In this document: positions 12,913 to 62,818 of the stretch, in pieces
Numbering within the stretch: the stretch's first letter is position 1
Layout: the number at the start of each line of letters is the position of its first letter
IMG/VR virus record: IMGVR_UViG_3300030085_002431
Span: 62,001-126,000 of that record
Strand: one strand, 5' to 3'
Length of the DNA: 64,000 nt
Position numbers and translations under genes: made by a program
The notes under the pieces: model-generated
Seen by the model: only the letters and a program-made list of their open reading frames with translations
Database searches by the model: none
What the model was told of the DNA's origin: nothing

Positions 12913-13620
12913 ATGAAATCTTTTGCGGAATTTATTGATGAATCGAAGAGTGGTGATAGTTCTCTGCGTGACTGGTTTAGCAAGAGTTCTTCTGATGATG
13001 GCACCCCTGGTTGGGTTCAGTTGGGTGGCAAATATGCAGGGAAACCCTGTGCAAGACAACCAGGACAAAAGACCAAACCAAAGTGTGGGTCTTCAAAAAT
13101 GAAGAGAAACCTCTCAAAGGAAGAGGAAGAAAAGGCATTTAGACGCAAGAACCGTGAAGACGGTAATCCAGATCGCAGAGGTAAAGCAAAGAACGTTGCT
13201 ACTGAAGAAACTGTTCTGGAGAAAGCAGGTGAAAAGGATGCGTGCTATAAAAAGGTCAAGTCTCGTTATAGAGTTTGGCCAAGTGCATACGCATCTGGAG
13301 CACTTGTAAAATGTCGCAAAGTTGGTGCTGCGAACTGGGGTAATAAAACTAAGAAGGAAGACTTCTCCCCAAAAGCAACAGCACTAGTGGAGAGATATAC
13401 TAAATTACAGGAGAGAGGCAAAACTTATCACGTCCGTTTTCAGTGGAGAGGGAAGTACGAAGGTATCCAAATATTCTTCCCAAGTCTGACAACACCCACT
13501 AAAATGGAAGTGTCTGCCCAGATTGAAAAAATCTATCCTGGTGCAACAGTAATCTCTTTTGGTCCACACTTTAGAGACCCAACCCAACCATTACTACATG
13601 TAGGAGAAGACAACCCATGA
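12913..13620 (+). CDS. Conserved basic modular phage protein, putative internal head protein
   Basis: Starts MKSFAEFIDE (T4 capsid-targeting-like); contains DACYKKVKSRYRVWPSAYASGALVKCRK; TAAATA at 12887. Confidence 0.6.
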   Translation: MKSFAEFIDESKSGDSSLRDWFSKSSSDDGTPGWVQLGGKYAGKPCARQPGQKTKPKCGSSKMKRNLSKEEEEKAFRRKNREDGNPDRRGKAKNVATEETVLEKAGEKDACYKKVKSRYRVWPSAYASGALVKCRKVGAANWGNKTKKEDFSPKATALVERYTKLQERGKTYHVRFQWRGKYEGIQIFFPSLTTPTKMEVSAQIEKIYPGATVISFGPHFRDPTQPLLHVGEDNP

Positions 13621-13793
13621 ATCCTGATGAAATAACACTTGATTCTCTTTCCAAGACGTTTGAATACGAGAAACAAGTACGAGAAATCGAGGACTGTGAT
13701 GATATTAAAACAATCAAAAATATTTGTAAAGCATATATTAAGTTATATCTAAAACAGCAAGAAACAGTTGCTGCAATTGGTTTAATGAGTTAA
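13617..13793 (+). CDS. 58-aa helix-loop-helix protein, NblA-like (phycobilisome degradation adaptor candidate)
   Basis: Below the track cutoff. MNPDEITLDSLSKTFEYEKQVREIEDCDDIKTIKNICKAYIKLYLKQQETVAAIGLMS; AGGAGA upstream; ATGA overlap with the previous stop. Confidence 0.5.
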   Translation: MNPDEITLDSLSKTFEYEKQVREIEDCDDIKTIKNICKAYIKLYLKQQETVAAIGLMS

Positions 13794-13802
13794 AAATTTT
13801 TC

Positions 13803-15452
13803 ATGGCTGACAAACATTATAAGGGCAATCCAAATCTCAAAGCAGAGAATGTCCAGGTTGAATTTACTGAAGAGCAAATTTCTGAGTATCTAAAATGCAA
13901 AGCAGATCCAGTTTATTTTGCACTTAAGTATATTCGTATCGTTTCTCTGGATGAGGGTTTGATTCCCTTTGACATGTATGACTTCCAGAAAGATTTAATT
14001 AAAAACTTTCACGAACAACGTTTTAATATTGCGAAACTACCTCGTCAGACTGGAAAGTCTACGACTGTGGTTTCGTATCTACTTCATTATGCACTGTTCA
14101 ACGATAATATTAGGATTGCAATCCTAGCAAACAAAGCAGAGACTGCAAGAGAACTGCTTCAGAGGTTGCAACTTTCTTATGAGAATTTACCAAAGTGGTT
14201 ACAGCAAGGTGTTGGTTCTTGGAACAAGGGTTCTCTAGAACTTGAGAATGGTTCTAAGATTATTGCTGCATCCACCTCCAGTTCTGCTGTCCGAGGAAAT
14301 TCATTTAACATCATTTTCTTGGACGAATTTGCGTTCATCCCAAACCATATTGCAGAGCAGTTCTTTAGTTCTGTATATCCAACGATTTCATCTGGTAAAA
14401 CAACCAAGGTTATTATCATTTCTACCCCTAACGGGATGAATATGTTCTATAAACTTTGGCACGATGCTGAACGTGGAAAGAATGATTACAAACCATTAGA
14501 AGTTCATTGGAGTGCAGTTCCTGGTAGGGATGCAAAATGGAAAGAAGAAACCATACGTAATACATCAGAGAGACAGTTTACTCAGGAGTTTGAGTGTGAG
14601 TTCCTGGGGTCTGTTGATACTCTTATTGCGCCTTCTAAACTTAGAAATATGGTCTATAGTGATCCTATACAAAGAAATAAGGGTCTAGATGTATATGAAG
14701 AACCAAAACCAGACCACCAATACTTAATGACAGTTGACGTTGCCAGAGGAACTGGAAAAGACTACTCTGCGTTTGTCATGTTTGATATTACAAGTTTCCC
14801 GTACAAGATTGTTGCAAAGTATAGGAATAATGAAATTAAACCAATGCTATTCCCAAATATTATTGATAGGGTAGGAAAGGCATATAATAAATCTTTCATT
14901 CTAGTTGAGGTCAATGATATTGGTGAACAGGTTTCCAGTATGCTTCAATTTGATTTGGAGTATGACAACCTTCTGATGTGTGCCATGAGAGGTAGAGCAG
15001 GTCAAATGGTTGGTCAGGGATTTTCTGGTAAGAAATCTCAGTTAGGAATTAAAATGTCCAAAACTGTAAAACAAGTTGGGTGCTCCAACTTAAAAACAGT
15101 TATTGAAGATGATAAGTTGCTTATAAATGATTATGATATCATCAGTGAATTAACAACATTTATTCAAAAGAATCAAACATTTGTAGCAGAAGATGGTTGC
15201 CATGACGACCTTGCTATGTGTCTTGTTATTTTCTCTTGGTTGATTGTTCAACCATACTTTAAAGAAATGACGGATAATGATATCCGAAAAAGAATTTATG
15301 AGGACCAAAGAGACCAGATTGAACAAGACATGGCACCATTCGGATTTGTAAGTGATGGTTTATCTGACGACAGTTCATTTGTAGATGCTGCTGGTGATAG
15401 ATGGCATACAGATGAGTATGGTGACCGTTCATATATGTGGGAGTATTATTGA
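13803..15452 (+). CDS. gp17: Terminase large subunit gp17
   Basis: PRQTGKST Walker A, IIFLDEFAF Walker B, ISTPNG, RNase H-like DVARG...HDDL. Confidence 0.98.
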   Translation: MADKHYKGNPNLKAENVQVEFTEEQISEYLKCKADPVYFALKYIRIVSLDEGLIPFDMYDFQKDLIKNFHEQRFNIAKLPRQTGKSTTVVSYLLHYALFNDNIRIAILANKAETARELLQRLQLSYENLPKWLQQGVGSWNKGSLELENGSKIIAASTSSSAVRGNSFNIIFLDEFAFIPNHIAEQFFSSVYPTISSGKTTKVIIISTPNGMNMFYKLWHDAERGKNDYKPLEVHWSAVPGRDAKWKEETIRNTSERQFTQEFECEFLGSVDTLIAPSKLRNMVYSDPIQRNKGLDVYEEPKPDHQYLMTVDVARGTGKDYSAFVMFDITSFPYKIVAKYRNNEIKPMLFPNIIDRVGKAYNKSFILVEVNDIGEQVSSMLQFDLEYDNLLMCAMRGRAGQMVGQGFSGKKSQLGIKMSKTVKQVGCSNLKTVIEDDKLLINDYDIISELTTFIQKNQTFVAEDGCHDDLAMCLVIFSWLIVQPYFKEMTDNDIRKRIYEDQRDQIEQDMAPFGFVSDGLSDDSSFVDAAGDRWHTDEYGDRSYMWEYY

Positions 15453-21017: not shown

Positions 21018-21668
21018 ATGAAATTAATTACCGAAGAAATCGAAAAGGTTGAACTTATTGTCGAAGAAAAGAACGGCAAGAAGAACCTGTTTATTGAGGG
21101 TATTTTCCTTCAGGCAAATAAGCCTAACAGAAACAAAAGACTCTATGAGATGAACATCCTAGAGAAAGAAGTTAAGCGTTACAACGAAAACTTCGTTCAA
21201 AAGGGTCGTGCTCTTGGAGAACTTGGTCACCCCGATGGACCTACTGTCAATCTAGACAGAGTATCTCACAAGATTACCATGCTTGAGAGAAAGGGTGATA
21301 ATTTTGTTGGAAAAGCAAAAATCCTAGAAACCCCAATGGGTAAGATTGCATCTAATCTTTTAAGTGAAGGTGTATCTTTAGGTGTGTCTTCCCGTGGTGT
21401 TGGTTCACTAAAACCAACATCTGAAGGTTATTCCTTAGTTGGTGAAGACTTCATGCTAGCAACTGCTGCTGACATCGTTGCTGATCCTTCTGCACCTGAT
21501 GCATTTGTTCAGGGTGTTATGGAAGGAAAAGAATGGGTGTGGGACGGGGGAATCCTCCGTGAGCAACTAGCAGAGAAAACTTATAAGAGAATAAATACTC
21601 TAGTTGACCAGAAGGTACTAGACGAGCATAAGCTCAATTTATTCCAAGAGTTCCTTTCAAATCTATAA
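21018..21668 (+). CDS. gp21: Prohead protease gp21
   Basis: MKLITEE, ALGELGHP, GVSSRGVGSL, DIVADPSAPDAFV. Confidence 0.97.
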   Translation: MKLITEEIEKVELIVEEKNGKKNLFIEGIFLQANKPNRNKRLYEMNILEKEVKRYNENFVQKGRALGELGHPDGPTVNLDRVSHKITMLERKGDNFVGKAKILETPMGKIASNLLSEGVSLGVSSRGVGSLKPTSEGYSLVGEDFMLATAADIVADPSAPDAFVQGVMEGKEWVWDGGILREQLAEKTYKRINTLVDQKVLDEHKLNLFQEFLSNL

Positions 21669-21723: not shown

Positions 21724-22890
21724 ATGTCCCGTGGTAACGATTTACAGGAAATGGAAGTAGGCACAGCACAATCCAAATCTGCCGTTAATGCAGGTGCTAA
21801 GCCAGCAGAAGGTATGCCAGCAGCAGGTTCTAATGCTTCTGGTGTATCTACTCCTGGTCAAAGCCCTTCCTACGAAGATCTAGGTGGTCCATCACCAGAT
21901 AACTATAAGCCTGATGACGATTCAGCAAAGCTGAAGACTCCAGGTGCTTCCTTGTCCCAGGTAAAAGACGTAGTTAATGCAAAGGCAAAGCCTGCAGATG
22001 CTATGAAGTCTATGGCAAGAGAAGAAGTAGAAGCAGAAGAGGAAGCAATCTCTGAAGAGGAAGTAACTACTGATGAAGTAGTTGCTGAATCTGAAGAGGC
22101 AACCGAAGAGACCATTTCTGAGGAAGAAGTAGAGTCCGAAGCAGTTGCATCTATCGAAGAAGCAATTGAAGAAGATGTAAACGCACTTCTTTCTGGTGAA
22201 GAACTCTCCGAAGAGTTCCGTGACAAGGCAAAGACAATCTTTGAGGCAGCAATCAATGCTCGCACTCAACAGATTGAAGAAGCAGTTGCGGCACATTATG
22301 AAGCACAGTTCAACGAGCAAGTCGAAGAACTGAATGAATCACTGACTGCACGTCTTGATTCATATCTTGAGTATGTTGCTGAAGAGTGGTTCCAAGAGAA
22401 CGCACTCGCAGTTGAAAAAGGAATCCAAGCTCAGGCAACTGAGTCATTCCTATCTGGCCTGAAGGGCCTTTTTGAAGAACATTATGTATCAATCCCTGAA
22501 GAGAAATATGATGTGCTTGAGAGCATGGTAGAAAAACTTGATGAAATGGAGTCAAAACTCAACGAGCAAATCGATAAGAACGTTGCTCTAAACAAGAGAT
22601 TGGCAGAATCAGTAACCGACGTAATCTTTGCAGAGGTTTCTGAAGGACTAGCTCTTTCCCAAAAGGAAAAGCTTGCTACTCTCGCAGAAAATGTTGAGTT
22701 TGGTAGTGAACAGGACTATCGTGAGAAACTAGTAACTTTGAAGGAATCATACTTCTCTTCAAATACAGTTACTCAGAGAGATTCTCAAGATTATATTGCT
22801 GAAGAAACTACCACTTTAAACGAGCAAGTCGATGTAACTGGCTCAATGGGTATGTATCTAGAAGCACTACAGAGAGTTTCTAAAAAGTGA
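21724..22890 (+). CDS. gp22: Prohead scaffolding protein gp22
   Basis: Acidic coiled coil; LSEEF..KAKTIFEAA, YLEYVAEEW; sits between gp21 and gp23. Confidence 0.95.
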   Translation: MSRGNDLQEMEVGTAQSKSAVNAGAKPAEGMPAAGSNASGVSTPGQSPSYEDLGGPSPDNYKPDDDSAKLKTPGASLSQVKDVVNAKAKPADAMKSMAREEVEAEEEAISEEEVTTDEVVAESEEATEETISEEEVESEAVASIEEAIEEDVNALLSGEELSEEFRDKAKTIFEAAINARTQQIEEAVAAHYEAQFNEQVEELNESLTARLDSYLEYVAEEWFQENALAVEKGIQAQATESFLSGLKGLFEEHYVSIPEEKYDVLESMVEKLDEMESKLNEQIDKNVALNKRLAESVTDVIFAEVSEGLALSQKEKLATLAENVEFGSEQDYREKLVTLKESYFSSNTVTQRDSQDYIAEETTTLNEQVDVTGSMGMYLEALQRVSKK

Positions 22891-22934: not shown

Positions 22935-24332
22935 ATGCAAATGTTCAATGCTGAACAACTGCAGGAAAAGTGGGCACCTCTCCTAGACTACAACGGTCTA
23001 GGTGAAATCAAGGATTCCCACAGAAGAGCAGTTACTGCTATCCTGCTAGAGAACCAAGAGAAGGCACTCCGTGAAGAGCGTGAGTTCCTCTACGAGACTC
23101 CAACCGTAAATACTGACCCAGGTGCATCAGGTAATGCTGGCTTCTCTGGTGCAGCAGCTCCAGGTGGTCCAGTTGCAGGTTTCGACCCTGTTCTGATCTC
23201 CCTAATCCGTCGTTCAATGCCTAACTTGGTCGCATATGACCTAGCAGGCGTCCAACCAATGAACGCACCAACAGGACTCATCTTTGCGATGCGTTCTAAG
23301 TATGTCGATCAAAACGGTGCAGAAGCACTATTCGACGAAGCAGATACCGCATTCGCAGGACAGAATGCTGGTAAGGGCCTCTCCGCAGGTATGACCAACT
23401 CTGCAGTTGGTTTCGGTACTACCTCCCAGGACGGCACCAACCCAGGTCTGCTTAACCCAACCGCTACCTCAACCGACACCTATAACGTTGGTCAGGGTAT
23501 GTCAACTGCTGAAGCAGAAGGACTTGATGGTTCTGGCTCAGCAGCGTTCAACGAGATGGCATTCTCAATCGAGAAAGTCACCGTAACCGCAAAGTCAAGA
23601 GCACTCAAAGCTGAGTACTCACTAGAACTCGCACAAGACCTCAAGGCAATCCATGGTCTGAATGCTGAGGCTGAACTCGCAAACATTCTCTCCACAGAGA
23701 TTCTTGCTGAGATCAACCGTGAAGTCATCAGAACCATCTACAAGATTGCTGAGCAGGGTGCAACCCTCAACACAGCAAATGCAGGTGTATTCGACCTCGA
23801 CGTTGACTCCAACGGCAGATGGTCAGTTGAGAAGTTCAAGGGACTTATCTTCCAAATCGAGAGAGATGCGAACCAAATCGCACAAAGAACTCGTAGAGGA
23901 AAGGGTAACATGATCCTCTGCTCCGCAGACGTTGCATCAGCACTTACCCACGCAGGTCTTCTTGACTACACCCCTGCACTCAACGCAAACCTCAACGTTG
24001 ACGATGCTGGTAACACCTTCGCAGGTGTTCTCAACGGTCGTTACAGAGTATACATTGACCCATATGCTGCTAATAACAGCCAGGATCAATACTACGTTGT
24101 TGGTTATAAGGGTTCTTCACCTTACGACGCAGGTCTGTTCTATTGCCCATACGTACCTCTCCAGATGGTCCGTGCAGTTGGTGAGAACAGCTTCCAGCCC
24201 AAGATTGGCTTCAAGACTCGTTACGGCATTGTTGCAAACCCCTTCGCAGAAGGAACCAATGCTGGTCTTGGCCGTCTCGAGCGCAACTCCAACCGTTACT
24301 ACAGAAGAGTCAAGGTCGCAAACCTCATGTGA
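22935..24332 (+). CDS. gp23: Major capsid protein gp23
   Basis: GVQPMNAPTGLIFAMRS, KSRALKAEYSLELAQDLKAIHG, FQPKIGFKTRYG. Confidence 0.99.
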   Translation: MQMFNAEQLQEKWAPLLDYNGLGEIKDSHRRAVTAILLENQEKALREEREFLYETPTVNTDPGASGNAGFSGAAAPGGPVAGFDPVLISLIRRSMPNLVAYDLAGVQPMNAPTGLIFAMRSKYVDQNGAEALFDEADTAFAGQNAGKGLSAGMTNSAVGFGTTSQDGTNPGLLNPTATSTDTYNVGQGMSTAEAEGLDGSGSAAFNEMAFSIEKVTVTAKSRALKAEYSLELAQDLKAIHGLNAEAELANILSTEILAEINREVIRTIYKIAEQGATLNTANAGVFDLDVDSNGRWSVEKFKGLIFQIERDANQIAQRTRRGKGNMILCSADVASALTHAGLLDYTPALNANLNVDDAGNTFAGVLNGRYRVYIDPYAANNSQDQYYVVGYKGSSPYDAGLFYCPYVPLQMVRAVGENSFQPKIGFKTRYGIVANPFAEGTNAGLGRLERNSNRYYRRVKVANLM

Positions 24333-46099: not shown

Positions 46100-46105
46100 A
46101 TTTCC

Positions 46106-47113
46106 ATGGCAGGAACTAGGTCAGCCCAAGAAGTAAATCTTCTAGCAAAAGTTAAGAAGTTCCAAGAGAAGTGTGGTGGAAAACCAATCAACATAGTATT
46201 TTCTAACCAGGGTTTTGGTTCAGTTGGACCAGCTGCTGGAGGTCAGATTGAAGATATAACTAACTTCCTTGAAAACCCTCAAGGTGATAGGTCTGCTGCG
46301 GATATTGTTGCTATTGATAGTAGTCAAAGGCAATATAGTATTTCATGTAAGCAATACAATCCAGGAAACTTCTGTGGACAGGGACTAAAAAGTTTTACAG
46401 AAGAAAATAAAGTTATGAATTTATGGATGCATCAGGTTCTTGGTAGTGTTGCGGCATTTTATCAAAAGAAAACTGACGATGCTGTTAAATATGCTATTGA
46501 TTATCTTTTAAAAATAATTAGAAATAGTCCTGCCAATCAACCATTAACTCCTGTGCAACAGCAGGCAATAGAAAGACAATGGAAAAAAGCTAAGGGATTG
46601 ATGCTTCCTAACTTATACATACCCATTCCTGCAGGAATGAGAAGAGCATTATTTGAATGTAAGCAAATTTACACTGGAGAGGTTGTCACTCATTATATAA
46701 CTGGTGGAACTGCAAATAATCCAGATGAGGATGTAAAAAAAAGAACAATTACTTTTAGTGATTGTACTCTTAAAACTGTTGATGAAATGGTACAGGATTC
46801 TGGTATGATATATCTTGTGATTAGGAAGAGAAGAGCAGACCAGTTTCTTAATATCACAGATAGAAGTGGAAACCCGATAAAAGATTCTCGTAAGTTTTTA
46901 CAAATTTTTGGAGCTGGTATAAAGGGTGAAAGTGGTAGAAGAGTTCAAGTTAGGCAGCAGAGGCAGTTGCCTACTAAATTGAGAAATAATGTTTTCTTAG
47001 ATAATGGTCAGAAGACATCAAGAGCAAGTAAAACATCTGATTCTGAGATTTTAGAAGTGCCATTGAGTGAAGTTCTAAATGGTATTGCTGCCGCAAAATA
47101 CAATAATAAATAA
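46106..47113 (+). CDS. Hypothetical protein, possible PD-(D/E)xK-fold nuclease
   Basis: ADIVAID...YSISCK resembles the D...(S/E)xK nuclease core. Confidence 0.45.
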   Translation: MAGTRSAQEVNLLAKVKKFQEKCGGKPINIVFSNQGFGSVGPAAGGQIEDITNFLENPQGDRSAADIVAIDSSQRQYSISCKQYNPGNFCGQGLKSFTEENKVMNLWMHQVLGSVAAFYQKKTDDAVKYAIDYLLKIIRNSPANQPLTPVQQQAIERQWKKAKGLMLPNLYIPIPAGMRRALFECKQIYTGEVVTHYITGGTANNPDEDVKKRTITFSDCTLKTVDEMVQDSGMIYLVIRKRRADQFLNITDRSGNPIKDSRKFLQIFGAGIKGESGRRVQVRQQRQLPTKLRNNVFLDNGQKTSRASKTSDSEILEVPLSEVLNGIAAAKYNNK

Positions 47114-47135: not shown

Positions 47136-48308
47136 ATGAAGAGTTTTGCTCACTTTTTTCAAGAAGCAGTAGAAACCCTTGCATCTACTGAAGCAAAGAA
47201 CCGTGGTCTCCAGGGCAACGGTCATGGAGACTGGTACGATGCCAAGGGTAACTTTGTAGCAAAAACTGTAGGTGGAAAGTTAAAGTATTTTGGTGCTGGT
47301 GATACTAAGTCTGTAGACGGAAAACCTGGTGAGGAAGTAAAAAGACAGAAACCACAGAGAGCAAAACCAGCAGTACAACAGACAGAGCAAGAACCAGAGA
47401 ATGGATTGGTTGTTGTTCTTGGTAAGTTCAATCCCCCATCAAAGAATCATGAGGGTCTTTTGAGAGCAGGATTCTCTCAGGCCAATAGACTTGGATATGA
47501 GTTTAGAATTTATCCAAGTAGAGCAACAGATCCACAGTCAAACCCACTCAATCCAACTGCTAAAATTGATTATATGAAGCAGTTGTTCCCCAAGTATGCT
47601 GACTATGTTGTTGATAGTGAAGAGTCTAGAACTATCTTTGATATCCTCCAGTCAACATATAATGATGGGTACACTGCAATCACATTAGTCGTAGGACAAG
47701 AAAGACTAGGTGAATTCCAGAGTCTTGTTCATAAGGGTGAAGGGCAAGGATATGAGTTTAATAATATTGAAGTAATTTCTGCAGGGGTCAAAGACCCAGA
47801 CAGTGATGTTGAGTCTCCTGGTTCAGCAGCACTTATGAGAGCAGCAGTTGCTATGGATGACTTTGAGAACTTTAAGGGTGGGGTTCCGATGGGAATCTCT
47901 GATGCTGTAAAGAGAAAACTATTCTCAACCATGAAGAAATCCATGGAAGCAACGGAAGTTACTGAAGCATGGAAGATTGCACCAGAACTTGACCGTGATG
48001 GATTGAGATGGAATTATAAGAATAATGGACTGTTTGAAGTTGGAACCATTGTAGAAAGTCTTAGTAATGGTCTCAGAGGTATTATCAAGAGACGTGGTGC
48101 TAACTATCTGATTTGTGTAACTGAAGATGGAATTATGTTCAAGAGTTGGTTGAGAGATGTTATGGAAGTCCATGAGGTTGGGACGGATGAATATAGAGAG
48201 TATCTTCAGCAACTCACTCCAGGTGAGACAAAGCATAGATTTACTGATGGTGTCGTACCAAATACTTACCCGAAAAAGAAATCTATAAATAATAAAAGGA
48301 AAAAGTAG
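47136..48308 (+). CDS. Cytidylyltransferase-like (HxGH nucleotidyltransferase fold) protein
   Basis: GKFNPPSKNH, D...NPL....K...MK.LFP, VVGQER, ISAG, SAALMRAA; N-terminus MKSFAHFFQE. Confidence 0.8.
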   Translation: MKSFAHFFQEAVETLASTEAKNRGLQGNGHGDWYDAKGNFVAKTVGGKLKYFGAGDTKSVDGKPGEEVKRQKPQRAKPAVQQTEQEPENGLVVVLGKFNPPSKNHEGLLRAGFSQANRLGYEFRIYPSRATDPQSNPLNPTAKIDYMKQLFPKYADYVVDSEESRTIFDILQSTYNDGYTAITLVVGQERLGEFQSLVHKGEGQGYEFNNIEVISAGVKDPDSDVESPGSAALMRAAVAMDDFENFKGGVPMGISDAVKRKLFSTMKKSMEATEVTEAWKIAPELDRDGLRWNYKNNGLFEVGTIVESLSNGLRGIIKRRGANYLICVTEDGIMFKSWLRDVMEVHEVGTDEYREYLQQLTPGETKHRFTDGVVPNTYPKKKSINNKRKK

Positions 48309-48319
48309 ACCTATTTGAG

Positions 48320-49924
48320 ATGGCTGAAAGCAACTACGCCAAATTCCAGAGACAGAAAAGAGAAAGAGCACAAGCAAAAAGAACTGCTGCTGCGAAGAGA
48401 GCTGCTGCTAATAAGATTATTAATGACCTTGCAAAGGAAGGTAAGAAGGAGAAGGCAGGTAAAGGTGAAGATTCTCCTTGGTTCCAACTGCAAAAGCAGC
48501 AGTTTGAACTGAGAAAGAAGAAGTACGAAGACCAGAGAAATAAAGAAAAAAGCAAAGATAAGGGAGAGGAAGATAAGAGGGGTGCTAGGAGAGCACTCTC
48601 TTCATTAGGACAGGGACAAAGAATTTCATCAGACGAAGGTGGTGCTACAGCATCTCAAAAAGCATTTAGTAATGCTGCTGGTGATGTTGGCAAACTAGCA
48701 AAGGCAGCTTTCTTAGGAGCCCGTGGTGCCCTTAAGACTGTTAAAGGCAAGAGGGATGCTGCATCGAGACCAGACAAAAAGGAAATGGGTAAGGGTGGAA
48801 GACCACGCAAACTTCAAGCACCCACTCCACCAAAACCAGAAATGAAGCAAATTGGTGGAACCCAAGTTAAGGGACTTCTTCCACCAGAAAGAAGGAAGAA
48901 TAAAATTGGTAGACAACTACCTCCTGCCTCTAGTCCTGACCCAACTAAGAAACCAACTGTTGGACAACCTGCTGCAGGAAGTAGACCAATGCTTCCAGGT
49001 AGCATGAAGAGAAGAATGTTACCTGGTGCAGGTGAGAGTGGTCCAACTAGAACTGCTAAAGGTACGATTGGAACTTCTAGAGTTGGCCAACCAACACCAA
49101 AAAGACCTGCATTACCTATGGCTGTTGATAAGAGAAAGATGCTTCCCCCAGCATCAAAAAGTGATGGTCCAGCAAAAGTTGCAGGTGGAAAGTCCTATGG
49201 TAAACTCGGACAGTCAGCAAGAGCAAATCCTGCCTTGAGAGCAAAACTAACCAAGGAAAGAGGTGGTCAGACTGACTTTAAGAAGGCAAAGAGAAAGGTT
49301 CTTGGTCTTGAGGAGTTTTCATATAAAGAGCAACTCCTTATTGAAAAAGTTGAGTTTCTTCAAGAAGTAGATAATAAAGAGGATAAAAAGAAAAAGAGAA
49401 AGGATGTCATCGACATCATGAAGGGTAAGAATAAAGTTACTATTAATCCGATGGAGGAATCCAAGGATTATGAGGGCAAGATGGCAAGGAACCAACTTAA
49501 TACTATGGAGAGAGCAATTAAATCTCTTCGTAAAAAGTTAGGGAACGACCATCAAGAACTTCCTGCTTGGGTTCAGTCTAAGATTACCAAAGCAACTGAT
49601 TATATTGATACAGTTGCAGATTATATGGACAGTAGTGATGACATTTCTGAGGGCATAGATAAGTCTAAAATGAAATGCAATAAACCAAAAGCACAAGCAG
49701 TAGGTAACTCTCTCACTGGAAAGTCTCATGTTGTTAAGGCATGTGCTAATGGACAAGAAAAGATTATTCGTTTTGGTCAGAGGGGTGTAAAAGGTTCACC
49801 TAAAAAGAAAGGTGAGTCTAAGGAATATGCTTCTCGTCGCAATAGATTTAAATCTAGACATGCGAAGAATATTGCCAAAGGTAAAATGAGTGCAGCTTAT
49901 TGGGCTAATCGGGTCAAGTGGTGA
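48320..49924 (+). CDS. Large basic, low-complexity modular late protein
   Basis: TATAAATA at 48284; Lys/Pro/Gly-rich; modules DYEGKMARNQL..LPAWVQSKIT and IIRFG...FKSRH...YWANRVKW. Confidence 0.65.
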   Translation: MAESNYAKFQRQKRERAQAKRTAAAKRAAANKIINDLAKEGKKEKAGKGEDSPWFQLQKQQFELRKKKYEDQRNKEKSKDKGEEDKRGARRALSSLGQGQRISSDEGGATASQKAFSNAAGDVGKLAKAAFLGARGALKTVKGKRDAASRPDKKEMGKGGRPRKLQAPTPPKPEMKQIGGTQVKGLLPPERRKNKIGRQLPPASSPDPTKKPTVGQPAAGSRPMLPGSMKRRMLPGAGESGPTRTAKGTIGTSRVGQPTPKRPALPMAVDKRKMLPPASKSDGPAKVAGGKSYGKLGQSARANPALRAKLTKERGGQTDFKKAKRKVLGLEEFSYKEQLLIEKVEFLQEVDNKEDKKKKRKDVIDIMKGKNKVTINPMEESKDYEGKMARNQLNTMERAIKSLRKKLGNDHQELPAWVQSKITKATDYIDTVADYMDSSDDISEGIDKSKMKCNKPKAQAVGNSLTGKSHVVKACANGQEKIIRFGQRGVKGSPKKKGESKEYASRRNRFKSRHAKNIAKGKMSAAYWANRVKW

Positions 49925-49959
49925 TAAATAGTTGAGAAATTATTTTTGAGGATGAACCC

Positions 49960-50163: not shown

Positions 50164-50179
50164 TACTAACTACCTTTAG

Positions 50180-50204
50180 GGGGGAGAAGTGATCTCCCCC
50201 TTTT
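50180..50204 (+). terminator. Intrinsic terminator
   Basis: GGGGGAGA-AGTGA-TCTCCCCC-TTTT. Confidence 0.75.
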
Positions 50205-50262
50205 AGTATCTAAACAATATTATAAATAAAAAAAGGTAAATGACTCATACGGAATAGAGAAC

Positions 50263-50757
50263 ATGGCACTTTGGGGAAACAAAGATACGGTGTACTCAAC
50301 TGGAACAGTAACTTCAGTTGATGCTGCTGGTGTAGTTACTGGTAATGGTACTACTTGGAATAGTGGAAATGGTGTTGTACCTGGTTTGGTAATCACTCTT
50401 GGTACTGGAAATGGTAGTGGTGTTATTAAGTCTGTTGATTCAACAACTCAACTTACTCTAGTATCTACTGCTGGTGTGTTGGGAACTGTTAACGCAGGCA
50501 CTGCATATAATATTTCTGAGCAACCAGTCTATCTCCCTGAAGATAGCAACTATACTGGTAATGAGATTTACGGTATTGATACCACAGAAATTGGTGTTGC
50601 AAAAACCACTGCATATGGTGGTGTTGCACATGCTGGATGGGTTGGTGTTACAACCTACACTGATACACACGGAAAACTGAGAGTCAAGAGTGAAGTGCTA
50701 GTTGCAGGCAGCAGCATTACAGCTGACGCAGCAGACGACGCAAGATTCGCAGAATGA
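50263..50757 (+). CDS. Probable virion structural protein
   Basis: TATAAATA at 50221; MALWG, HAGWV...G.LRVKSEVLVA; Gly/Thr-rich. Confidence 0.65.
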   Translation: MALWGNKDTVYSTGTVTSVDAAGVVTGNGTTWNSGNGVVPGLVITLGTGNGSGVIKSVDSTTQLTLVSTAGVLGTVNAGTAYNISEQPVYLPEDSNYTGNEIYGIDTTEIGVAKTTAYGGVAHAGWVGVTTYTDTHGKLRVKSEVLVAGSSITADAADDARFAE

Positions 50758-56261: not shown

Positions 56262-58652
56262 ATGCCAACTACTGATATACGCAGTGGAATCAATGAACGT
56301 CTCCTTTATACATTAGGAAAAAGACCAGAGGATGCCACTGTAAATGATGTATATAAAGCATTATGCTATGCCGTAAGGGATAGAATGGTTTCCGATTATC
56401 TTGAAGAGAAACCAGCACAGAAAGAAGTTGCATATCTCTCTGCTGAGTTCTTGATTGGACCTCAGTTAGGAAATAATCTTTTCAATCTAGATATACAGAA
56501 AGAAGCAGAGACTGCGGTAAAAGAATACGGATATACCCTTGATGATGTCTTAGAGGAGGCATGTGAACCTGGACTAGGAAATGGTGGTCTGGGTCGTCTT
56601 GCTGCTTGCTACATTGAGTCCTTGTCAACTCTCAAGGTTCCTGCAGTTGGATATGGAATCCGATATAAGTATGGTATTTTTAAACAGAGTATCAAAGATA
56701 ACAAGCAGGTAGAAGTAACGGATAACTGGTTACATGGTGATTGGCCATGGGAACTTTGCTATCCTGACCAGTCGGTTACAGTCTCATTTGGTGGGAAGGT
56801 AGAGCACTACACTTCAGATAAGAATAACTACAGAACTCGTTGGGTTCCTGAAGAGCAAGTAGTTGCTGTCCCTTATGATGTTTTGCAGGCAGGATATAAG
56901 GTCAATAAGTGCAATAAACTTAGACTATGGAGAGCAGATGCTATTGATGTATTTGATTATTCTGCTTTCAATAGTGGGGATTACTTTGGTTCAGTTGAAA
57001 ATAGAGTAGCATCAGAAACTATCTCTAAGGTTCTTTATCCAAATGATGAAACTACACAGGGAAAAGAACTGAGACTCAAGCAACAGTTCTTCTTTGTTAG
57101 TGCTTCTATCCAAGATATGGTAAGAAGTCTCAAGGAAAGAAATCTACCACTGGAAGATTTCCATGAGCATTATCAAGTTCAATTAAATGATACCCACCCA
57201 TCAGTTGCAGTTGCTGAACTGATGAGAATTCTCACTGATGAGAATCATATGGATTGGGATTTGGCATGGGATATCACAAACAAGTCTATTGCATATACAA
57301 ACCATACACTACTTCCAGAGGCACTGGAGAAGTGGGACCTAACCTTGTTTGGTAACTTACTCCCAAGGCACCTAGAAATAATCTATGAAATCAATCATAG
57401 GTTCTTGCAGATTGTTCGACTGAGATATCCTGGTGATGATGATATGCTTAGAAAGTTGTCCATCATTGACGAGTCTGGAAAACGTTCAGTTCGGATGGCA
57501 CACCTTGCAACAGTTGGGTCTCATCATGTGAATGGTGTTGCAGAAATCCATTCTGATTTGGTGAAGACAAAACTAATGCCAGAGTTCTATGCTCTTTGGC
57601 CTCACAAGTTTACTAATGTTACTAATGGTGTGACACCACGTCGATGGTTGGCATGTTCAAATCCAGACCTAGCAAAAGTTCTTAATCACTATGTTGGACC
57701 TGAGTGGGTATCAGATACTAGTCTCTTAAGTCACTTGGAAAATCATGTTGATGATAGTGAACTTCTAGAGAAACTAAACTTAACAAAACTAGAGGGAAAA
57801 CGTAAACTGTCTCGATATATACAAAACACACTTGGTATATCGGTTGATCCGACAAGTATGTTTGACGTACAGGTAAAGAGGATTCATGAGTACAAACGAC
57901 AGCATCTCCTTGCTTTATGGATTGTTAGTAGGTATATGTACATTAAGAATCACAAAGACGATTATGTTGTTCCTCGTACAATAATCTTTGGTGGTAAGGC
58001 AGCACCTGGATATTGGATGGCAAAACTAATCATCCAATTTATTTGCAACCTTGCCGAGACAATCAATTCCGACCCAGACATGGATGGAAAGTTGCGTGTT
58101 GTATTCTTACCTAACTACAGTGTTAAGTTGGGTGAGAAGGTTTATCCTGCTGCAGATTTGTCGGAGCAAATTTCTACTGCTGGTAAGGAAGCATCTGGTA
58201 CTGGTAATATGAAGTTCCAAATGAACGGTGCTTTAACTATTGGAACACTTGATGGTGCAAACGTTGAGATTAGGGACCTTGTAGGTGAAGAAAACTTCTT
58301 CTTGTTTGGTAACACTGAACCAGAGATTGAAGAACTTTGGAAGAATGGATATAATCCTAAACTCTTTATGAGTGCTGGATTGTTTAATTCTCTTGAACTT
58401 ATTTCCTCAGGTCATTTCTCCAATGGTGATAAAGAAGTATTCAAACCTCTGGTCTTGGATATCATGAACAAAGACCCATTCTGTGTTGCTGCTGACTTTG
58501 ATGATTATTGTCGTGCTCAAAGTGTAGTAGATACATGTTGGGGTAATAGAGAAGAGTGGAATAAAAAAGCACTCATTAATATTGCACGTTCTGGTTTCTT
58601 TTCTTCTGATAGGTCTATTGAAGACTACTGTGATAATATCTGGAAGATGTAG
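56262..58652 (+). CDS. glgP: Glycogen/alpha-glucan phosphorylase (GT35, PLP-dependent)
   Basis: YLSAEFLIG, GLGNGGLGRLAAC, ELRLKQQFF, QLNDTHP, YTNHTLLPEALE, VKRIHEYKRQ, EASGTGNMK (PLP lysine), TLDGANVE, FSSDRSI. Confidence 0.97.
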   Translation: MPTTDIRSGINERLLYTLGKRPEDATVNDVYKALCYAVRDRMVSDYLEEKPAQKEVAYLSAEFLIGPQLGNNLFNLDIQKEAETAVKEYGYTLDDVLEEACEPGLGNGGLGRLAACYIESLSTLKVPAVGYGIRYKYGIFKQSIKDNKQVEVTDNWLHGDWPWELCYPDQSVTVSFGGKVEHYTSDKNNYRTRWVPEEQVVAVPYDVLQAGYKVNKCNKLRLWRADAIDVFDYSAFNSGDYFGSVENRVASETISKVLYPNDETTQGKELRLKQQFFFVSASIQDMVRSLKERNLPLEDFHEHYQVQLNDTHPSVAVAELMRILTDENHMDWDLAWDITNKSIAYTNHTLLPEALEKWDLTLFGNLLPRHLEIIYEINHRFLQIVRLRYPGDDDMLRKLSIIDESGKRSVRMAHLATVGSHHVNGVAEIHSDLVKTKLMPEFYALWPHKFTNVTNGVTPRRWLACSNPDLAKVLNHYVGPEWVSDTSLLSHLENHVDDSELLEKLNLTKLEGKRKLSRYIQNTLGISVDPTSMFDVQVKRIHEYKRQHLLALWIVSRYMYIKNHKDDYVVPRTIIFGGKAAPGYWMAKLIIQFICNLAETINSDPDMDGKLRVVFLPNYSVKLGEKVYPAADLSEQISTAGKEASGTGNMKFQMNGALTIGTLDGANVEIRDLVGEENFFLFGNTEPEIEELWKNGYNPKLFMSAGLFNSLELISSGHFSNGDKEVFKPLVLDIMNKDPFCVAADFDDYCRAQSVVDTCWGNREEWNKKALINIARSGFFSSDRSIEDYCDNIWKM

Positions 58653-58656
58653 TCAT

Positions 58657-58686
58657 AGGGGGCATTGCCCCCTTTTTTTATAAATA
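58657..58686 (+). terminator. Terminator after glgP, followed immediately by late promoter TATAAATA
   Basis: AGGGGGCA-T-TGCCCCCT plus a T run; TATAAATA at 58679-58686. Confidence 0.75.
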
Positions 58687-58706
58687 AAAGAAACTGTGTC
58701 CATAAG

Positions 58707-61388
58707 ATGTCAAATATAGATGACGTAAAAAATCTGTATGAGGGAATTGCGGCAGAAGCATATAAAATGCCTGATCGAGTTGACCCAGCAGATATTAGAA
58801 AAGCACAACGTGCAAAGAAAGTAAGAAACCTTGCAACCGATGGTGCTACTGAAGGTGAAAGGGCAGCAGCAGAAAGAAAGACTAAAGGTCCTAAGATGTT
58901 TGGTGAAGGTAAGTACTCCAACTCTGAGACTTATGTAAAGGGTACTGCACCAGTTAGAGCAACTTATGGTGGGAAAACTGAATCTTTTCCTAAAGAAACT
59001 TATAAGAAGAAATCAAAAAAGAACGTAACTGAAGATACTTGTCCAGTTTGTGGGTTTGATCCATGCCAGTGCCTAGAAGGTACTTTGGTTGAGAAGAAGA
59101 AAGATTGTGTCAAGGCAGACAAAAAGACCATGCACAATTGTGCTAAGAAAGTCTGCTCTGAGCAGTGGGGTGTTGGTGAGTGCATCTATGGACAACATGC
59201 TGTCCCTGATGCTGAAGGTAACGTCGCATGGTATGACGTATTGTTCGAGCATGGCATCGAGAAAGGTGTAGATATCTCGACACTGGAAGTCCTGGAAGAA
59301 GGTTCACATAATGAGCATGTTGAGCACAGTGCTGAACTCACTGAAAAGAAGAAAGATGAGGCAAATATTGGTGGTGGCAACCTAAAGAAACTTGCTAAGA
59401 AAGCAACTAAGAGAGTTGACTCCAATGTAGATGGCACTGTAAACAGCAGTGACATGAAGGATTCTGATGTCGGTGAGTTTGTACCTGGACCAACTGGTGG
59501 CAAGGTAAAGACTAAGGCAAGATTTGAGAACTGGAGAAGTGATATGCATCCTCTCGTTGAGAGGACTATGACTGCTAAAGATAAGAAGAAAGAAGACCGT
59601 CTCAAGGATAAGTATGATGATTCTGAGATGAAGCAGAATATGATTGATAAGTACGGAAAGGAAGAAGGTGAAAAGATTTATTATGCAACAATCCGTAAGC
59701 AGGCAATGAAGGAGGAGATTGATAAGAGAAGAGCACCAGCAGAGCTGGTTTCTAGACTGAGTGCGAAACGTGAAGGTCACATGGCACAGGATGGACCTAA
59801 CAAAGCAGCATATGATGCTAAGCAGAGACTCCTTGCTAAGTCAAAAGCAAAAAGAGTTGATGAAGCAAAGTTCTTCCCTAATGCAGAAGACCCATTTGGT
59901 GCAACTGATAGACTTAAGAAGGTAAAACGTCCTGGCACAATCAAAAACAAAGGTGCTGGATATAAGGAGGGACAATCACTCAAGCACACTATCTTGAAGA
60001 AAGAAGGTCGCAAGGGTAAGGAAGGTATTGAATCTGCTGTTACAAGTCAAAAAGATAAACTAAGACAAAGAGGAAGACTTGCTGTTCCAACTCCTAAAGC
60101 CGTTTCTGATATGAGAAAGGCAAGTCTTGAAAAGTCTATGAGTAAAAAATCAAAGACTCCAGACCATGAGACTACTAGAGCAAAACTTGATAAGTCTCTG
60201 AAGTCTAAGTTGGGTGGTGACAGCAAGATGCAAAAGGCAGCAGATGATATTCTGTCTAGGGCAGCAAAAGATTCGGCAGTTGGTCCAGAATCTAAAGCAG
60301 CAGCATCTAGAGTCTTTAGTGGAAATATCAGTGGTAAGGGTGAAGAGAAACTAGTTGGTGGTGGTAAGCAACCAACTAAGAGACAGAGAGCAAAACTCAA
60401 TATGAGCAGAGACCTTGCGAAAGCAGGTGTTTCAATGAAAAAGGAACCATCCAAGAAAGTTAGTAGAAAACTTGAAAATACAACAGCAGGTGGTCCAGTA
60501 AAAGTTGTTAAAGCAGCACAAGATAAAAACAATAGTCCAAAGAAAGACAAAAGGTCTGAACCAAAGAGAAAAATCAAAAAGTCTCTTGGTGAGGAATACC
60601 TTGCACTCTATGGAGATGTGATTGCAGCACTTCTCGATTCCGAGTATGCAATCAACGAAGAGTCTGCAAACAATCTATTTGATTGCATGACTGAGGATGC
60701 TCTTACTGTAATCACTGAGCAGTATCTAGAGGAAAAAGCAAGAGGCACTAGAAAGAAATCTACTGCACACATCTATGATATGGACGAGACTCTTTATGGT
60801 CATGACCACTCTAAGGTAAGAGTCCACGTCAATGATAAGTCTGGTAAGAGAATTCAGAGTCTGAGCAATCAGGAGTTCAATACTCACAAACTAGATAAAG
60901 CTAAGGGTCATAAGTATGACTTCTCCGAGTTCGGTAGTTCAAAGACTTTCCAAAAGTCTGCGAAACCACTCAAGAAGATGATTAAGCATATGAAGAGACA
61001 GAAGGCAAGAGGATATGATACCCATATCGTCACTGCACGTTCTGACTTTGATGATAAGAAGCATCTTGCAAAGCAGCTCAATAAGCATGGTGTTGACATC
61101 ACACCAAATAAGAAAGGGACACACACTCACCTACACCGTTCTGGTAATGAAGAGGGTGATGATGTAGGTAAGAAGAAGCAAAGAGTTCTTTCAAGACTTG
61201 CTAAGAGACATGGGTACAAAAAAATCCACATGTACGATGATGCCGAGAAAGTCCATAAGGCAACTCATGGAAAGACTCCTGGCACTAAAGTCAAAGGACA
61301 TATGGTAAAACCAAATAAAAAAGGTGAGGTTACTTCCCGTCCTTACAAACCTACCAAACCTGGAACTGGTAGAAATAACAACAAATGA
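58707..61388 (+). CDS. Large modular late protein with a C-terminal HAD-family phosphatase domain; putative internal head polyprotein
   Basis: ATG at 58707 follows the late promoter; basic modules are separated by hydrophobic-x-Glu sites; HAD motifs DMDET, IVTAR, K, YDD. Confidence 0.65.
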   Translation: MSNIDDVKNLYEGIAAEAYKMPDRVDPADIRKAQRAKKVRNLATDGATEGERAAAERKTKGPKMFGEGKYSNSETYVKGTAPVRATYGGKTESFPKETYKKKSKKNVTEDTCPVCGFDPCQCLEGTLVEKKKDCVKADKKTMHNCAKKVCSEQWGVGECIYGQHAVPDAEGNVAWYDVLFEHGIEKGVDISTLEVLEEGSHNEHVEHSAELTEKKKDEANIGGGNLKKLAKKATKRVDSNVDGTVNSSDMKDSDVGEFVPGPTGGKVKTKARFENWRSDMHPLVERTMTAKDKKKEDRLKDKYDDSEMKQNMIDKYGKEEGEKIYYATIRKQAMKEEIDKRRAPAELVSRLSAKREGHMAQDGPNKAAYDAKQRLLAKSKAKRVDEAKFFPNAEDPFGATDRLKKVKRPGTIKNKGAGYKEGQSLKHTILKKEGRKGKEGIESAVTSQKDKLRQRGRLAVPTPKAVSDMRKASLEKSMSKKSKTPDHETTRAKLDKSLKSKLGGDSKMQKAADDILSRAAKDSAVGPESKAAASRVFSGNISGKGEEKLVGGGKQPTKRQRAKLNMSRDLAKAGVSMKKEPSKKVSRKLENTTAGGPVKVVKAAQDKNNSPKKDKRSEPKRKIKKSLGEEYLALYGDVIAALLDSEYAINEESANNLFDCMTEDALTVITEQYLEEKARGTRKKSTAHIYDMDETLYGHDHSKVRVHVNDKSGKRIQSLSNQEFNTHKLDKAKGHKYDFSEFGSSKTFQKSAKPLKKMIKHMKRQKARGYDTHIVTARSDFDDKKHLAKQLNKHGVDITPNKKGTHTHLHRSGNEEGDDVGKKKQRVLSRLAKRHGYKKIHMYDDAEKVHKATHGKTPGTKVKGHMVKPNKKGEVTSRPYKPTKPGTGRNNNK

Positions 61389-61480
61389 CTTGTCCCAAGT
61401 GGCAGAACCCTCTCTGCCACTGAGAATAAATAAACGATAAATATAATTATAACGAAGGTAAAATCCACTACCCTAGAAAG

Positions 61481-62818
61481 ATGAATAGAGAAGACTTAGG
61501 TGCGCTGAAAAATTTGTATGAAGGATTGCAATCATCTCCTTCATCCGAGACAGATAAACCAACAGTAACCAAAACAATCACAACTGGGTTGGACATTTAC
61601 GAGTCCCAAATCCAAAATACAACTACTGAAGAAACTGCATCTAATGTGCTTTCTGAGGAAGTAGAAACTGTGACAAAAATTACAGCATCTACACCTTCAA
61701 CAACTCCTTTAAAGAATACTACAGGAACCTTCTCTGAGGCATCATGGGGAACCATGTCCACAGTTAAGGATATCGCAGATATCTATTCTAATCTATACGA
61801 GAAGAAAGATCAAGATAAAGATGGTGATAATGACTTTGATGATGTTCGCATTGCGAGAATGATTGCTTCTGGCATGTCCAGAGAAGAAGCAATGAAGAAA
61901 GTCAAGGAAGATCCTAAAGGTGATGAAGTAAAGGAAGAGACCGAGACTGTAGATGAAGTCTACAAGGGTAAGCACGGTCAATCTGATAAAGAGTATGCTG
62001 CTTCCCGTTCACAGGGTGGCAAGATGATTTCTGGTGATGACAAGATGAGTGGTGCTGAATACACTCACGGTCGTAGAGTCAAGGCAGCAAACCCTGGAAT
62101 GCAACCTGATGTAGGTGGCAAGACCAAGCCCAAGTCCCAGGGTAAAATGGACAGAGGTACAAAAGCAGACCTCATGTACCGCAAAGCAAATCTTAAGAAA
62201 GCAAACGAGGAAACTGAAATGGCAAATGAGTACGAAGTCTACAATGTAGTCTCCACTTATCTTCTGGAGAACAACTTTGCAGAATCACAAGAAGGTGCTG
62301 ATGCAATCATCGAGAACATGAGTTCTGAGTGGGTAGAGCAAGTTATCGAAGAGTACAACGAGTATGTAGATGAGTACAACCTCTTCCTTGAGGAACTCGA
62401 TGCAGTTGGTGTAGACCTCGATGAGTGGACCGATGAGGAACTAGAAGAAGCATACAAGAAGCTTCCATTCCGCAAGATGGTCAAGCAGGCAAAGAAGACT
62501 GGTAAGTCCCTCGACGACGTTATGAAGGTCTCCCAGAGCCACAACCCATCCAGAGTAAAGGGTCGTTCTGAAGCAAACAAGATGGCAGGTGCTATCACTG
62601 GAGGACGTGCAGCAGACCGTAACCCACCAAAGGCAGATAAGTCTAAGGACGAGCCAGGTGGATATGGTGATATGTCCAAGTACACTGGTGACATCTATGC
62701 TAAGAAGTTCAAGCCAGGTAAGACAGTTCCTAAGGTAATGAAGTTCGGCAGACCTTTCGGTAAGTACAAGCCAAGAAGCATCAAGTTCGATGACATCAAG
62801 AAGCAAGGTCTCGATTGA
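61481..62818 (+). CDS. Modular late protein, putative internal head protein
   Basis: TAAATA at 61427 and 61438; KNLYEG N-terminal motif shared with the upstream gene; alternating acidic and basic blocks. Confidence 0.6.
   Translation: MNREDLGALKNLYEGLQSSPSSETDKPTVTKTITTGLDIYESQIQNTTTEETASNVLSEEVETVTKITASTPSTTPLKNTTGTFSEASWGTMSTVKDIADIYSNLYEKKDQDKDGDNDFDDVRIARMIASGMSREEAMKKVKEDPKGDEVKEETETVDEVYKGKHGQSDKEYAASRSQGGKMISGDDKMSGAEYTHGRRVKAANPGMQPDVGGKTKPKSQGKMDRGTKADLMYRKANLKKANEETEMANEYEVYNVVSTYLLENNFAESQEGADAIIENMSSEWVEQVIEEYNEYVDEYNLFLEELDAVGVDLDEWTDEELEEAYKKLPFRKMVKQAKKTGKSLDDVMKVSQSHNPSRVKGRSEANKMAGAITGGRAADRNPPKADKSKDEPGGYGDMSKYTGDIYAKKFKPGKTVPKVMKFGRPFGKYKPRSIKFDDIKKQGLD

Follow-up and report, generated by a model that had tools for sequence, protein, structure and literature searches.

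Candidate T4-type capsid-targeting leaders and protease-type module junctions in probable late genes of a large cyanomyovirus

The window analysed here is a whole stretch of 64,000 nucleotides, bases 62,001–126,000 of a single 250,613-bp virus record (IMGVR_UViG_3300030085_002431), and window coordinates are used throughout. Five of its open reading frames (ORFs), at 12913, 47136, 48320, 58707 and 61481, are named P0001 to P0005. They were proposed in an earlier note on this DNA to encode packaged proteins that are processed in the capsid by the prohead protease gp21. The window also contains T4-type morphogenesis genes (gp16, gp17, gp20, gp21, gp22 and gp23), the replication genes gp43, gp41 and NrdA/B, and host-like metabolic genes. 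The DNA identity of the capsid gene to any isolate is at most 77%, with Synechococcus phages Sf-FS3, S-SCSM1 and S-SM2 and Prochlorococcus phage P-SSM2 as the nearest isolates by this gene, and a megablast search with the 46–50 kb region found no near relative in the phage collection. Judged by the capsid identity and the gene content, the source is a large T4-like cyanomyovirus, and none of its cultured relatives is close. The five genes are:

12913..13620, + strand: P0001, 235 amino acids, T4-GC119 family; leader, module A, module B, module C
47136..48308, + strand: P0002, 390 amino acids, the cyanophage-core 'cytidylyltransferase', T4-GC190
48320..49924, + strand: P0003, 534 amino acids, isoelectric point (pI) 10.3; module G at about 49463-49660, module I at 49661-49921
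58707..61388, + strand: P0004, 893 amino acids from ATG; leader MSNIDDVKNLYE then G, Cys-rich module from 59097, GGGNLKKL module at 59370-59561, long basic stretch, acidic helix from 60594, HAD-type phosphatase domain at about 60735-61290 behind YLEE then K
61481..62818, + strand: P0005, 445 amino acids; leader MNREDLGALKNLYE then G, conserved module at 61958-62230 (phrog_1418) behind VDE then V, acidic helical region at 62231-62455

Two of the proteins begin with a decapeptide that resembles the capsid-targeting sequence of the T4 internal proteins:

12913..12942, + strand: leader of P0001, MKSFAEFIDE; candidate gp21 site after E10, then S
47136..47165, + strand: leader of P0002, MKSFAHFFQE; candidate site before A11

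The T4 record gives MKTYQEFIAE, then A, as the N-terminus of both IPII and IPIII, and MKTFKEFTS for IPI. P0001 and P0002 agree with IPII and IPIII at positions 1, 2, 4 (aromatic), 7, 8 (hydrophobic) and 10. T4 genetics have assigned targeting mainly to residues 4 and 7, and processing to residues 8 and 10 (PMC9026906). When all six frames of the 250,613-bp genome are scanned with the expression M[KR].[FYW]..[FYWLI][ILFVM].E, the only matches are the N-termini of P0001 and P0002, both located five codons past an upstream stop. The earlier claim that these two proteins carry a T4-type capsid-targeting leader ending in a gp21-type site is upheld by sequence comparison.

The leader is conserved across relatives. 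In the P0002 family, represented by 80 IMG/VR loci, M1, F4, F7, E10 and A11 are invariant and K2 is nearly so, position 8 is F, I, V or L, and the remaining positions are free. The match is exact in 76 of these loci and extends to all 80 when a one-residue shift is allowed. The invariant residues coincide with the positions that are functionally critical in T4. The NMNAT-like protein of S-SCSM1 likewise starts MKSFLQFLKE, then A. Within the P0001 family, a leader (e.g. MKTFQEFILE then S) is found at the start of 30 of the 77 loci with a complete 5' end, and is directly followed by at least six different sequences or modules. A back-translated DNA version of the leader pattern has 16 matches in 10 other cyanomyovirus genomes or long contigs, and those with context examined all start ORFs; the reversed pattern has no matches in the same ten. 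A complete 247-kb relative carries four genes with the leader; two of these lie behind late motifs and encode small basic proteins (152 and 122 amino acids), much as the T4 internal proteins are small and basic. IMG/VR contains 74 copies of the exact leader MKTFKEF[LI]EE, 50 of them with ATAAATA no more than 60 nt upstream, and this leader heads at least 15 unrelated cargos of 95–250 amino acids in marine viral contigs. The leaders of P0001 and P0002 are probably functional targeting and cleavage signals.

The T4-type decapeptide is found in P0001 and P0002 only, P0003 having none and P0004 and P0005 having a different leader. The leaders of P0004 (MSNIDDVKNLYE, then G) and P0005 (MNREDLGALKNLYE, then G) end in LYE, which also forms the predicted maturation site in the phage's own gp23, and may be assigned as a second type by resemblance only. 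Related leaders ending in (L/V/M)YE or FDE start S-SM1 GC1454, S-SCSM1 gp280 and IMG/VR homologues of P0005. The strings quoted in the earlier note all lie where it placed them. KNLYEG is common to P0004 (..KNLYE then GI) and P0005 (..KNLYE then GL), with a pairwise BLAST E of 0.56. The acidic helical module that the note saw as common to both is not sustained (pairwise E = 13, not significant). P0004 had been listed as an ORF at 58665-61388 with a TTG start. The true start is the ATG at 58707, after the TATAAATA box, in agreement with homologues that begin MSNIDDVKNLYE at this point, including L183 (L-numbers denote IMG/VR loci or contigs).

All five ORFs have ATAAATA 20–48 nt upstream:

12886..12892, + strand: ATAAATA upstream of P0001, late-promoter-like
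47106..47112, + strand: ATAAATA upstream of P0002
48285..48291, + strand: TATAAATA core upstream of P0003, within the 3' end of P0002
58680..58686, + strand: TATAAATA core upstream of P0004, after a terminator-like hairpin
61426..61443, + strand: two ATAAATA motifs upstream of P0005
49960..50757, + strand: two further late-promoter genes, a 67-amino-acid ORF (phrog_402) and a 164-amino-acid T4-GC425-like protein

Genome-wide, the + strand has 53 copies of ATAAATA and the - strand two, and the motif is also found 5' of many tail and baseplate genes. This distribution fits the T4 and cyanophage late promoter, and by this comparison P0001 to P0005 are probably late genes, in keeping with the earlier description of most of them as lying behind TAAATA late promoters. 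P0002, P0003, the 67-amino-acid ORF and the 164-amino-acid ORF form a four-gene run with late motifs (47136-50757) among replication genes. Terminator-like G+C-rich hairpins followed by T runs are present at 58640-58680, 50200-50225 and 46060-46100, each directly 5' of a late motif (that of P0004, orf50263 and orf46106, respectively), and point to insulated late transcription units.

Homologues of these proteins have been identified in purified virions of other cyanophages. In S-SM1 virions GC190 was detected with 25 peptide counts and GC119 with 13, along with three proteins encoded on either side of the cytidylyltransferase gene (GC1453, GC1454 and GC1455) and two encoded slightly downstream (GC425 and GC426) (Sullivan et al. 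2010, PMC3037559, Table S8). The S-SM1 homologue of P0001 is SSM1_115 (GC119). In S-SCSM1 virions the NMNAT-like gp281 was detected (Wang et al. 2022, PMC9602691), and the record of this phage lists gp029 (GC119 family), gp089 (the P0005 homologue), gp280, gp279 and gp277 as further virion proteins. The position of P0003 is occupied by virion-protein genes in both phages (GC1454 and gp280). S-SCSM1 gp278, the likely counterpart of the 67-amino-acid ORF, is annotated as hypothetical, while gp277 and S-SM1 GC425 are virion proteins. NMNAT-like or cytidyltransferase proteins are present in the virions of S-CBWM1, S-SZBM1, S-SCSM1 and S-CREM2, and their entry into the host has been speculated upon (PMC10665884). 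Published mass spectrometry of S-SM1 or S-SCSM1 virions therefore covers P0001, P0002 and P0005 through homologues, and P0004 through a protein that has one of its modules.

P0002 consists of the leader, a conserved mini-domain (residues 12–53), a Q/P/E linker, an NMNAT/PPAT-like nucleotidyltransferase at about residues 90–270 and a small beta domain at about 300–340. AlphaFold2 (AF2) modelling with a 30-sequence alignment gave a mean predicted local distance difference test (pLDDT) score of 71.6, with the leader as a low-confidence helix and the Q/P/E linker disordered. Residues 90–270 adopt a Rossmann-like nucleotidyltransferase fold in this model, at a pLDDT of about 80–95. The top Foldseek matches in the PDB are NMNAT/NadD/NadM and PPAT (E 3e-5 to 5e-4, TM 0.5–0.65 target-normalised). 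The family consensus is GRFNPP(T/S)xxH...SASK(M/L)R, to be compared with the (H/T)xGH and ISxxxxR-like signatures. Distant members have T(V/I)GH, and P0002 itself has SKNH at this position. There is no Pfam match to P0002 even at E <= 5 and no PDB sequence match, and PHROG 395 'cytidyltransferase' is the only family-library match. Its orthologues, the virion NMNAT-like proteins or cytidyltransferases of cyanomyoviruses, are 35–47% identical over the full length, including the leader. One candidate internal gp21 site, EVTE then AW, was rejected: although the Glu is conserved, most homologues lack a hydrophobic residue at P3. On the model, P0002 is one NMNAT-like enzyme with a leader rather than a polyprotein.

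The processing machinery of T4 is retained in the window:

21018..21668, + strand: gp21 prohead protease, 45% identical to T4 gp21, with the GELxHP and GVSSRG motifs kept and the catalytic motifs aligned
21724..22890, + strand: gp22 scaffold, dense in hydrophobic-x-Glu, with 28 sites versus 15.5 expected
23094..23096, + strand: gp23 Glu54 in EFLYE then T, the positional equivalent of T4 gp23 SFLTE65 then A

S-SCSM1 gp23 has SFLAE then A at the aligned site. As the gp23 sites align (SFLTE65, SFLAE and EFLYE54), the L-x-E specificity of gp21 looks conserved. The protein at the gp22 position is acidic as well as site-dense. The excess of [LIVMF]-x-E relative to composition was ranked across 174 ORFs of at least 100 amino acids; gp21 is highest, followed by gp22, with P0005 third and P0004 fifth. 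The ratio is 1.9 for P0001, 1.10 for P0003 and about 1.05 for P0002, the last two having no excess. The hydrophobic-x-Glu sites described in the earlier note are present, and in excess in P0004 and P0005, with P0003 not enriched.

P0001 lies between gp16 (12464-12889) and gp17 (13803-15452), and T4-GC119 is a size-variable gene at this location. In a survey of 60 distinct family sequences, short modules recur in varying order. Those of P0001, and the others followed here, are:

12943..13221, + strand: module A (KSGDSSLRDWF...), ending at junction site VLE103
13222..13392, + strand: module B (EKDACY..SAYASGALVKCRK), ending at junction site LVE160; weak match to DUF5872
13393..13617, + strand: module C, a small alpha/beta domain, the sole confidently folded part of P0001
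Module D: KCWxGYEKKG
Module E: zinc-ribbon-like, RYCPxC
Module F: ..AAWxRKEG...RAWNC
Module G: AWVQSKITKAADYID
Module H: IAKKH..EHEHT
Module I: ..KMKCN..SAAYWxNxVKW
GGGNLKKL module: tracked besides A–I, present in P0004

In the AF2 model of P0001 residues 167–227 (module C) have a pLDDT of 83–91. Modules A and B are not confidently folded, so 'module' is defined here by recurrence and not by structure. A wide VIA-align structure search with this model found nothing above noise, the best Z being 5.0. Pairwise BLAST among P0001 to P0005 found no significant common module. Modules G and I are present in P0003, and both recur in GC119-family proteins (L042 and L059). With these in P0003 and GGGNLKKL in P0004, the five window proteins share one module pool.

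Modules of P0004 and P0005 are likewise found in other proteins. The GGGNLKKL module of P0004 matches the virion protein S-SCSM1 gp280 (E 2e-12). The C-terminus of P0004 is a HAD-type (DxDxT) phosphatase-like domain, homologous to a leader-bearing 203-amino-acid protein in L251 (E 5e-24). P0005 residues 103–291 are 52% identical to the virion protein S-SCSM1 gp089 (E 5e-51). Pfam and PDB sequence searches with P0001 to P0005 and their parts found nothing above threshold, the only weak matches being DUF5872, HAD Acid_phosphat_B and DUF5703. Module recurrence and shuffling are seen, and of these modules just C and the HAD domain resemble folded domains. By sequence, P0001, P0004, P0005 and the C-terminal third of P0003 appear to be assembled from modules of 25–90 residues that are shuffled across cyanophage genes. 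The proposal that the genes are strings of cassettes holds for these, and fails for P0002, a single NMNAT-like enzyme, and for residues 1–330 of P0003, which are one long basic low-complexity stretch (pI 10.9) with few sites.

P0003 residues 443–534 (49646-49921; phrog_7595) are up to 63% identical to small ORFs elsewhere, including those of Roseobacter phage SIO1, pelagiphage HTVC106P, and cyanopodo- and siphoviruses. This module therefore circulates well outside the T4-like phages.

The module junctions have a characteristic sequence. For modules A–D, [LIVMF]-x-E is present within 6 residues upstream in 44 of 49 distinct contexts, against a background of 9.8% (binomial p ~6e-39). Among cases with a Glu, the share with a hydrophobic P3 is 63% at junctions and 17% elsewhere (Fisher p 3e-17); because the contexts share ancestry and are not fully independent, both p-values are overstated. 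The junction profile is V, L or I at P3, any residue at P2, and A, K, G or S at P1'. Sites are depleted inside the modules (12 observed, 28 expected), and module A has none in 39 instances, where 11.4 would be expected. The upstream boundaries of modules A–D mostly coincide with the Glu motifs, a check that the earlier note had proposed.

Five modules (A, C, F, WS.KYKKSIDCNNPKGF and the HAD domain) are found in two settings, immediately after a leader and after an internal hydrophobic-x-Glu junction. Module A directly follows the P0001 leader (FIDE then SKSGDSS) and is found internally as GVSE then SKSGDSS. In S-SCSM1 gp030 and L265 module C is the only module after the leader, as is WS.KYKKSIDCNNPKGF in L199 and L229. 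Module F makes up 95-amino-acid proteins (FLEE then AKGMEGMT) and is internal elsewhere (NIEE then GKGMEGMT). For the HAD domain, the BLAST alignment places FLEE then S of the L251 203-amino-acid leader protein opposite the internal YLEE then K of P0004. These stand-alone modules are the strongest indirect argument that the junction Glu is equivalent to Glu10 of the leader. Cleavage of the internal joints by gp21 is about as likely as not.

Taken together, P0001 to P0005 are read here, at a probability of about 0.6, as late-expressed virion proteins, most likely internal to the head, that appear to enter the prohead by the cargo-loading scheme of T4. The genes would be transcribed late. As in T4, the leader-bearing precursors would dock on the gp22 core of the assembling prohead, and gp21 would cut the leader off behind Glu10 (behind LYE in the case of P0004 and P0005). 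Removal of the P0002 leader would leave an NMNAT-like nucleotidyltransferase in the head. gp21 may also cut some or all of the V/L/I-x-E joints and so release small, mostly basic products, which would stay in the head with the DNA until infection and then exit by way of the tail. That the whole scheme applies, with many injected effectors, is less likely than not. Equally speculative is the wider proposal, in which the heads of T4-like cyanophages would contain small proteins and enzymes in combinatorial sets (NMNAT-like, HAD phosphatase and, in relatives, S-adenosylmethionine (SAM) lyase). These would be loaded by a portable leader or as polyprotein beads, cut by gp21 at V/L/I-x-E joints and injected before gene expression as anti-defence or host-takeover factors, the Glu joint serving as the point of both cleavage and module exchange.

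Several observations weigh against the head-cargo reading. P0003 has no recognisable leader, and the leader DNA pattern has no match in S-PM2. The S-SM1 GC119 protein lacks an N-terminal leader though it is in the virion, so the leader is not the sole route into the particle. The published proteomes are of whole purified virions and report presence in particles only. The resemblance-based assignment of the second leader type, the low model confidence of modules A and B, the lack of site excess in P0002 and P0003, and the shared ancestry behind the junction statistics count on the same side. In addition, the junction Glu could be an inherited part of the module or a structural feature of the linker, and the C-terminal module of P0003 is common in marine podoviruses without a T4-type protease.

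It is possible, if rather unlikely, that these are virion components that remain intact save at most for leader removal, with the junction V/L/I-x-E being a linker, a domain cap or a part of the module instead of a cleavage site. Such an explanation would agree with linkers that are Glu-rich, with junction p-values that are inflated by ancestry and with the presence of module I in podoviruses that lack gp21, and the GC119, GC1454 and gp029 peptides were reported without size information. It accounts less readily for four unrelated modules that have one upstream motif (variable P2, V/L/I at P3, small P1'), for the depletion of sites inside modules, for stand-alone module genes with the leader Glu at the junction position, and for P0004 and P0005 ranking with gp21 and gp22 in site excess. 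That the leaders resemble the T4 sequence by coincidence, through a preference in translation initiation or for an amphipathic helix, is improbable. The proteins would then reach the particle by another route, such as association with tail, neck or baseplate or DNA binding, or be contaminants. The leader is only ten residues long and is lacking in the GC119 protein of S-SM1 virions, basic proteins stick to DNA, and the neighbouring virion protein gp277 is annotated as tail-fibre-like. Against this, the only two matches in six frames of 250 kb are both ORF starts behind late motifs, reversed-pattern controls are zero in ten genomes, the invariant positions are those critical in T4, the leader is portable over at least 15 cargos, and the lineage retains the gp21/gp22 machinery. 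It is more improbable still that these are ordinary intracellular late proteins, metabolic or DNA-binding, that stay outside the particle in this phage. P0002 does lie among replication and nucleotide-metabolism genes, and the proteomes come from phages other than this one. Orthologues or positional equivalents are nevertheless present in caesium chloride-purified virions of several cyanophages, and the genes have their own late-type motifs within an otherwise early/middle gene region.

The likeness of the proposed head-cargo system to T4 IPI, IPII, IPIII and Alt (Mullaney & Black 1996; PMC9026906) lies in a decapeptide that follows one pattern and closes with a gp21 site (I/L-x-E then A/S), in probable late expression, in a homologous gp21 and a gp22-type scaffold, and in a variable, mostly basic cargo behind a conserved leader, with an enzyme cargo as in Alt. 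The window cargos themselves have no sequence similarity to the T4 internal proteins, so that the resemblance is confined to the leader, and no PHROG or Pfam match of P0001 to P0005 to internal virion protein or Alt families was found. One window cargo is, in addition, a core, universally conserved NMNAT-like enzyme. The window system also differs in that it concatenates several cargos with internal sites, and its targeting, cleavage and injection are predicted here.

The inner-body and ejection proteins of phiKZ, 201phi2-1 and SPN3US, which have a gp21-related protease (PMC5694885), are similar in that many head-internal proteins are cut after Glu in x-X-E, with multiple sites per precursor and paralogues with identical N-terminal propeptides. 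Their motif is A/S-x-E rather than L/I/V-x-E, their cargo is unrelated in sequence, and their cleavages were found by mass spectrometry, whereas those here are predicted. Polyvalent proteins (Iyer et al. 2017, PMC5512222), which are characterised by two to fifteen independent domains and an embedded zincin or papain-like processing peptidase, also combine several modules in a virion-delivered polypeptide, with combinatorial shuffling and proposed proteolytic release. P0001 to P0005 differ from them in having no defining domains or peptidase of their own by Pfam, and in their much smaller modules, and release here would be by the prohead protease. An HExxH motif was seen only in L251:7344-10985 and not in the window proteins. 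This locus (IMG/VR contig 3300032288_001331) encodes a 1214-amino-acid protein of polyvalent-protein-like architecture, which combines a cytidyltransferase-type nucleotidyltransferase, HExxH (HELVHH), a P-loop domain and GC119-type modules A, B and F. Its gene adjoins the leader-bearing HAD phosphatase gene.

The virion association of the NMNAT-like enzyme has already been published, with speculation on NAD metabolism, and P0002 is an orthologue of these proteins (PMC3037559, PMC9602691, PMC10665884). The searched literature contains no paper linking these virion proteins to a capsid-targeting sequence or to gp21 processing. So far as was searched, the T4-type leader as an explanation of NMNAT packaging, the portability of the leader and the module strings at protease-type sites are new. 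Such a leader would explain the recurrence of NMNAT-like/cytidyltransferase and 'hypothetical' proteins in cyanomyovirus virions. Together with a late motif it could flag packaged, and probably injected, cargo in marine T4-like phages from sequence, and it could in principle serve to load foreign proteins into the heads of cyanophages, as in earlier work with T4. If real, module strings at protease-type sites would be a polyprotein layout not described for T4-like phages.

In related contigs, proteins of 161–172 amino acids of the SAM lyase family (PF23780, 71 bits) are found behind the leader MKTFKEFLEE then S. These are encoded at L230:1476-1958 and about 20 similar loci (L216–L271), most with a late motif upstream. 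In contig L269 such a gene lies next to cobS, gp44 and gp43. SAM-degrading enzymes of T3-like phages act against restriction. A SAM lyase cargo, as seen in those contigs and not in the window, would fit delivery with the DNA. This suggests that anti-restriction functions are delivered with the genome, and an early arms race in abundant marine phages.

The window contains two runs of ten N, at 40448-40457 and 53439-53448, neither of which is inside P0001 to P0005. The first breaks the NSAYG..IGNQYFRYY motif of the gp43 DNA polymerase, the window reading XXX where S-SM1 has one residue. The second breaks NrdA, with four X in the window against 18 residues in S-SM1, and hides about 14 residues beyond what ten N imply. 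By comparison with S-SM1, both runs are placeholders of the wrong length, with continuous flanks in the same gene and frame.

Some large host-like genes are also present. Directly 5' of P0004 is a full-length carbohydrate (glycogen) phosphorylase gene (56262-58652, + strand, 796 amino acids, Pfam PF00343, 1033 bits), preceded by a TAAATA motif. The second encodes an NdhD-like membrane protein (36215-37774, + strand, 519 amino acids, Pfam Proton_antipo_M, 217 bits), at which the local AT skew becomes negative. P0005 is adjoined by a SegE-like GIY-YIG endonuclease gene (62941-63381, + strand, Pfam PF19835, 186 bits), of which the best PHROG (447) is labelled 'NAD synthetase', probably a mislabel.

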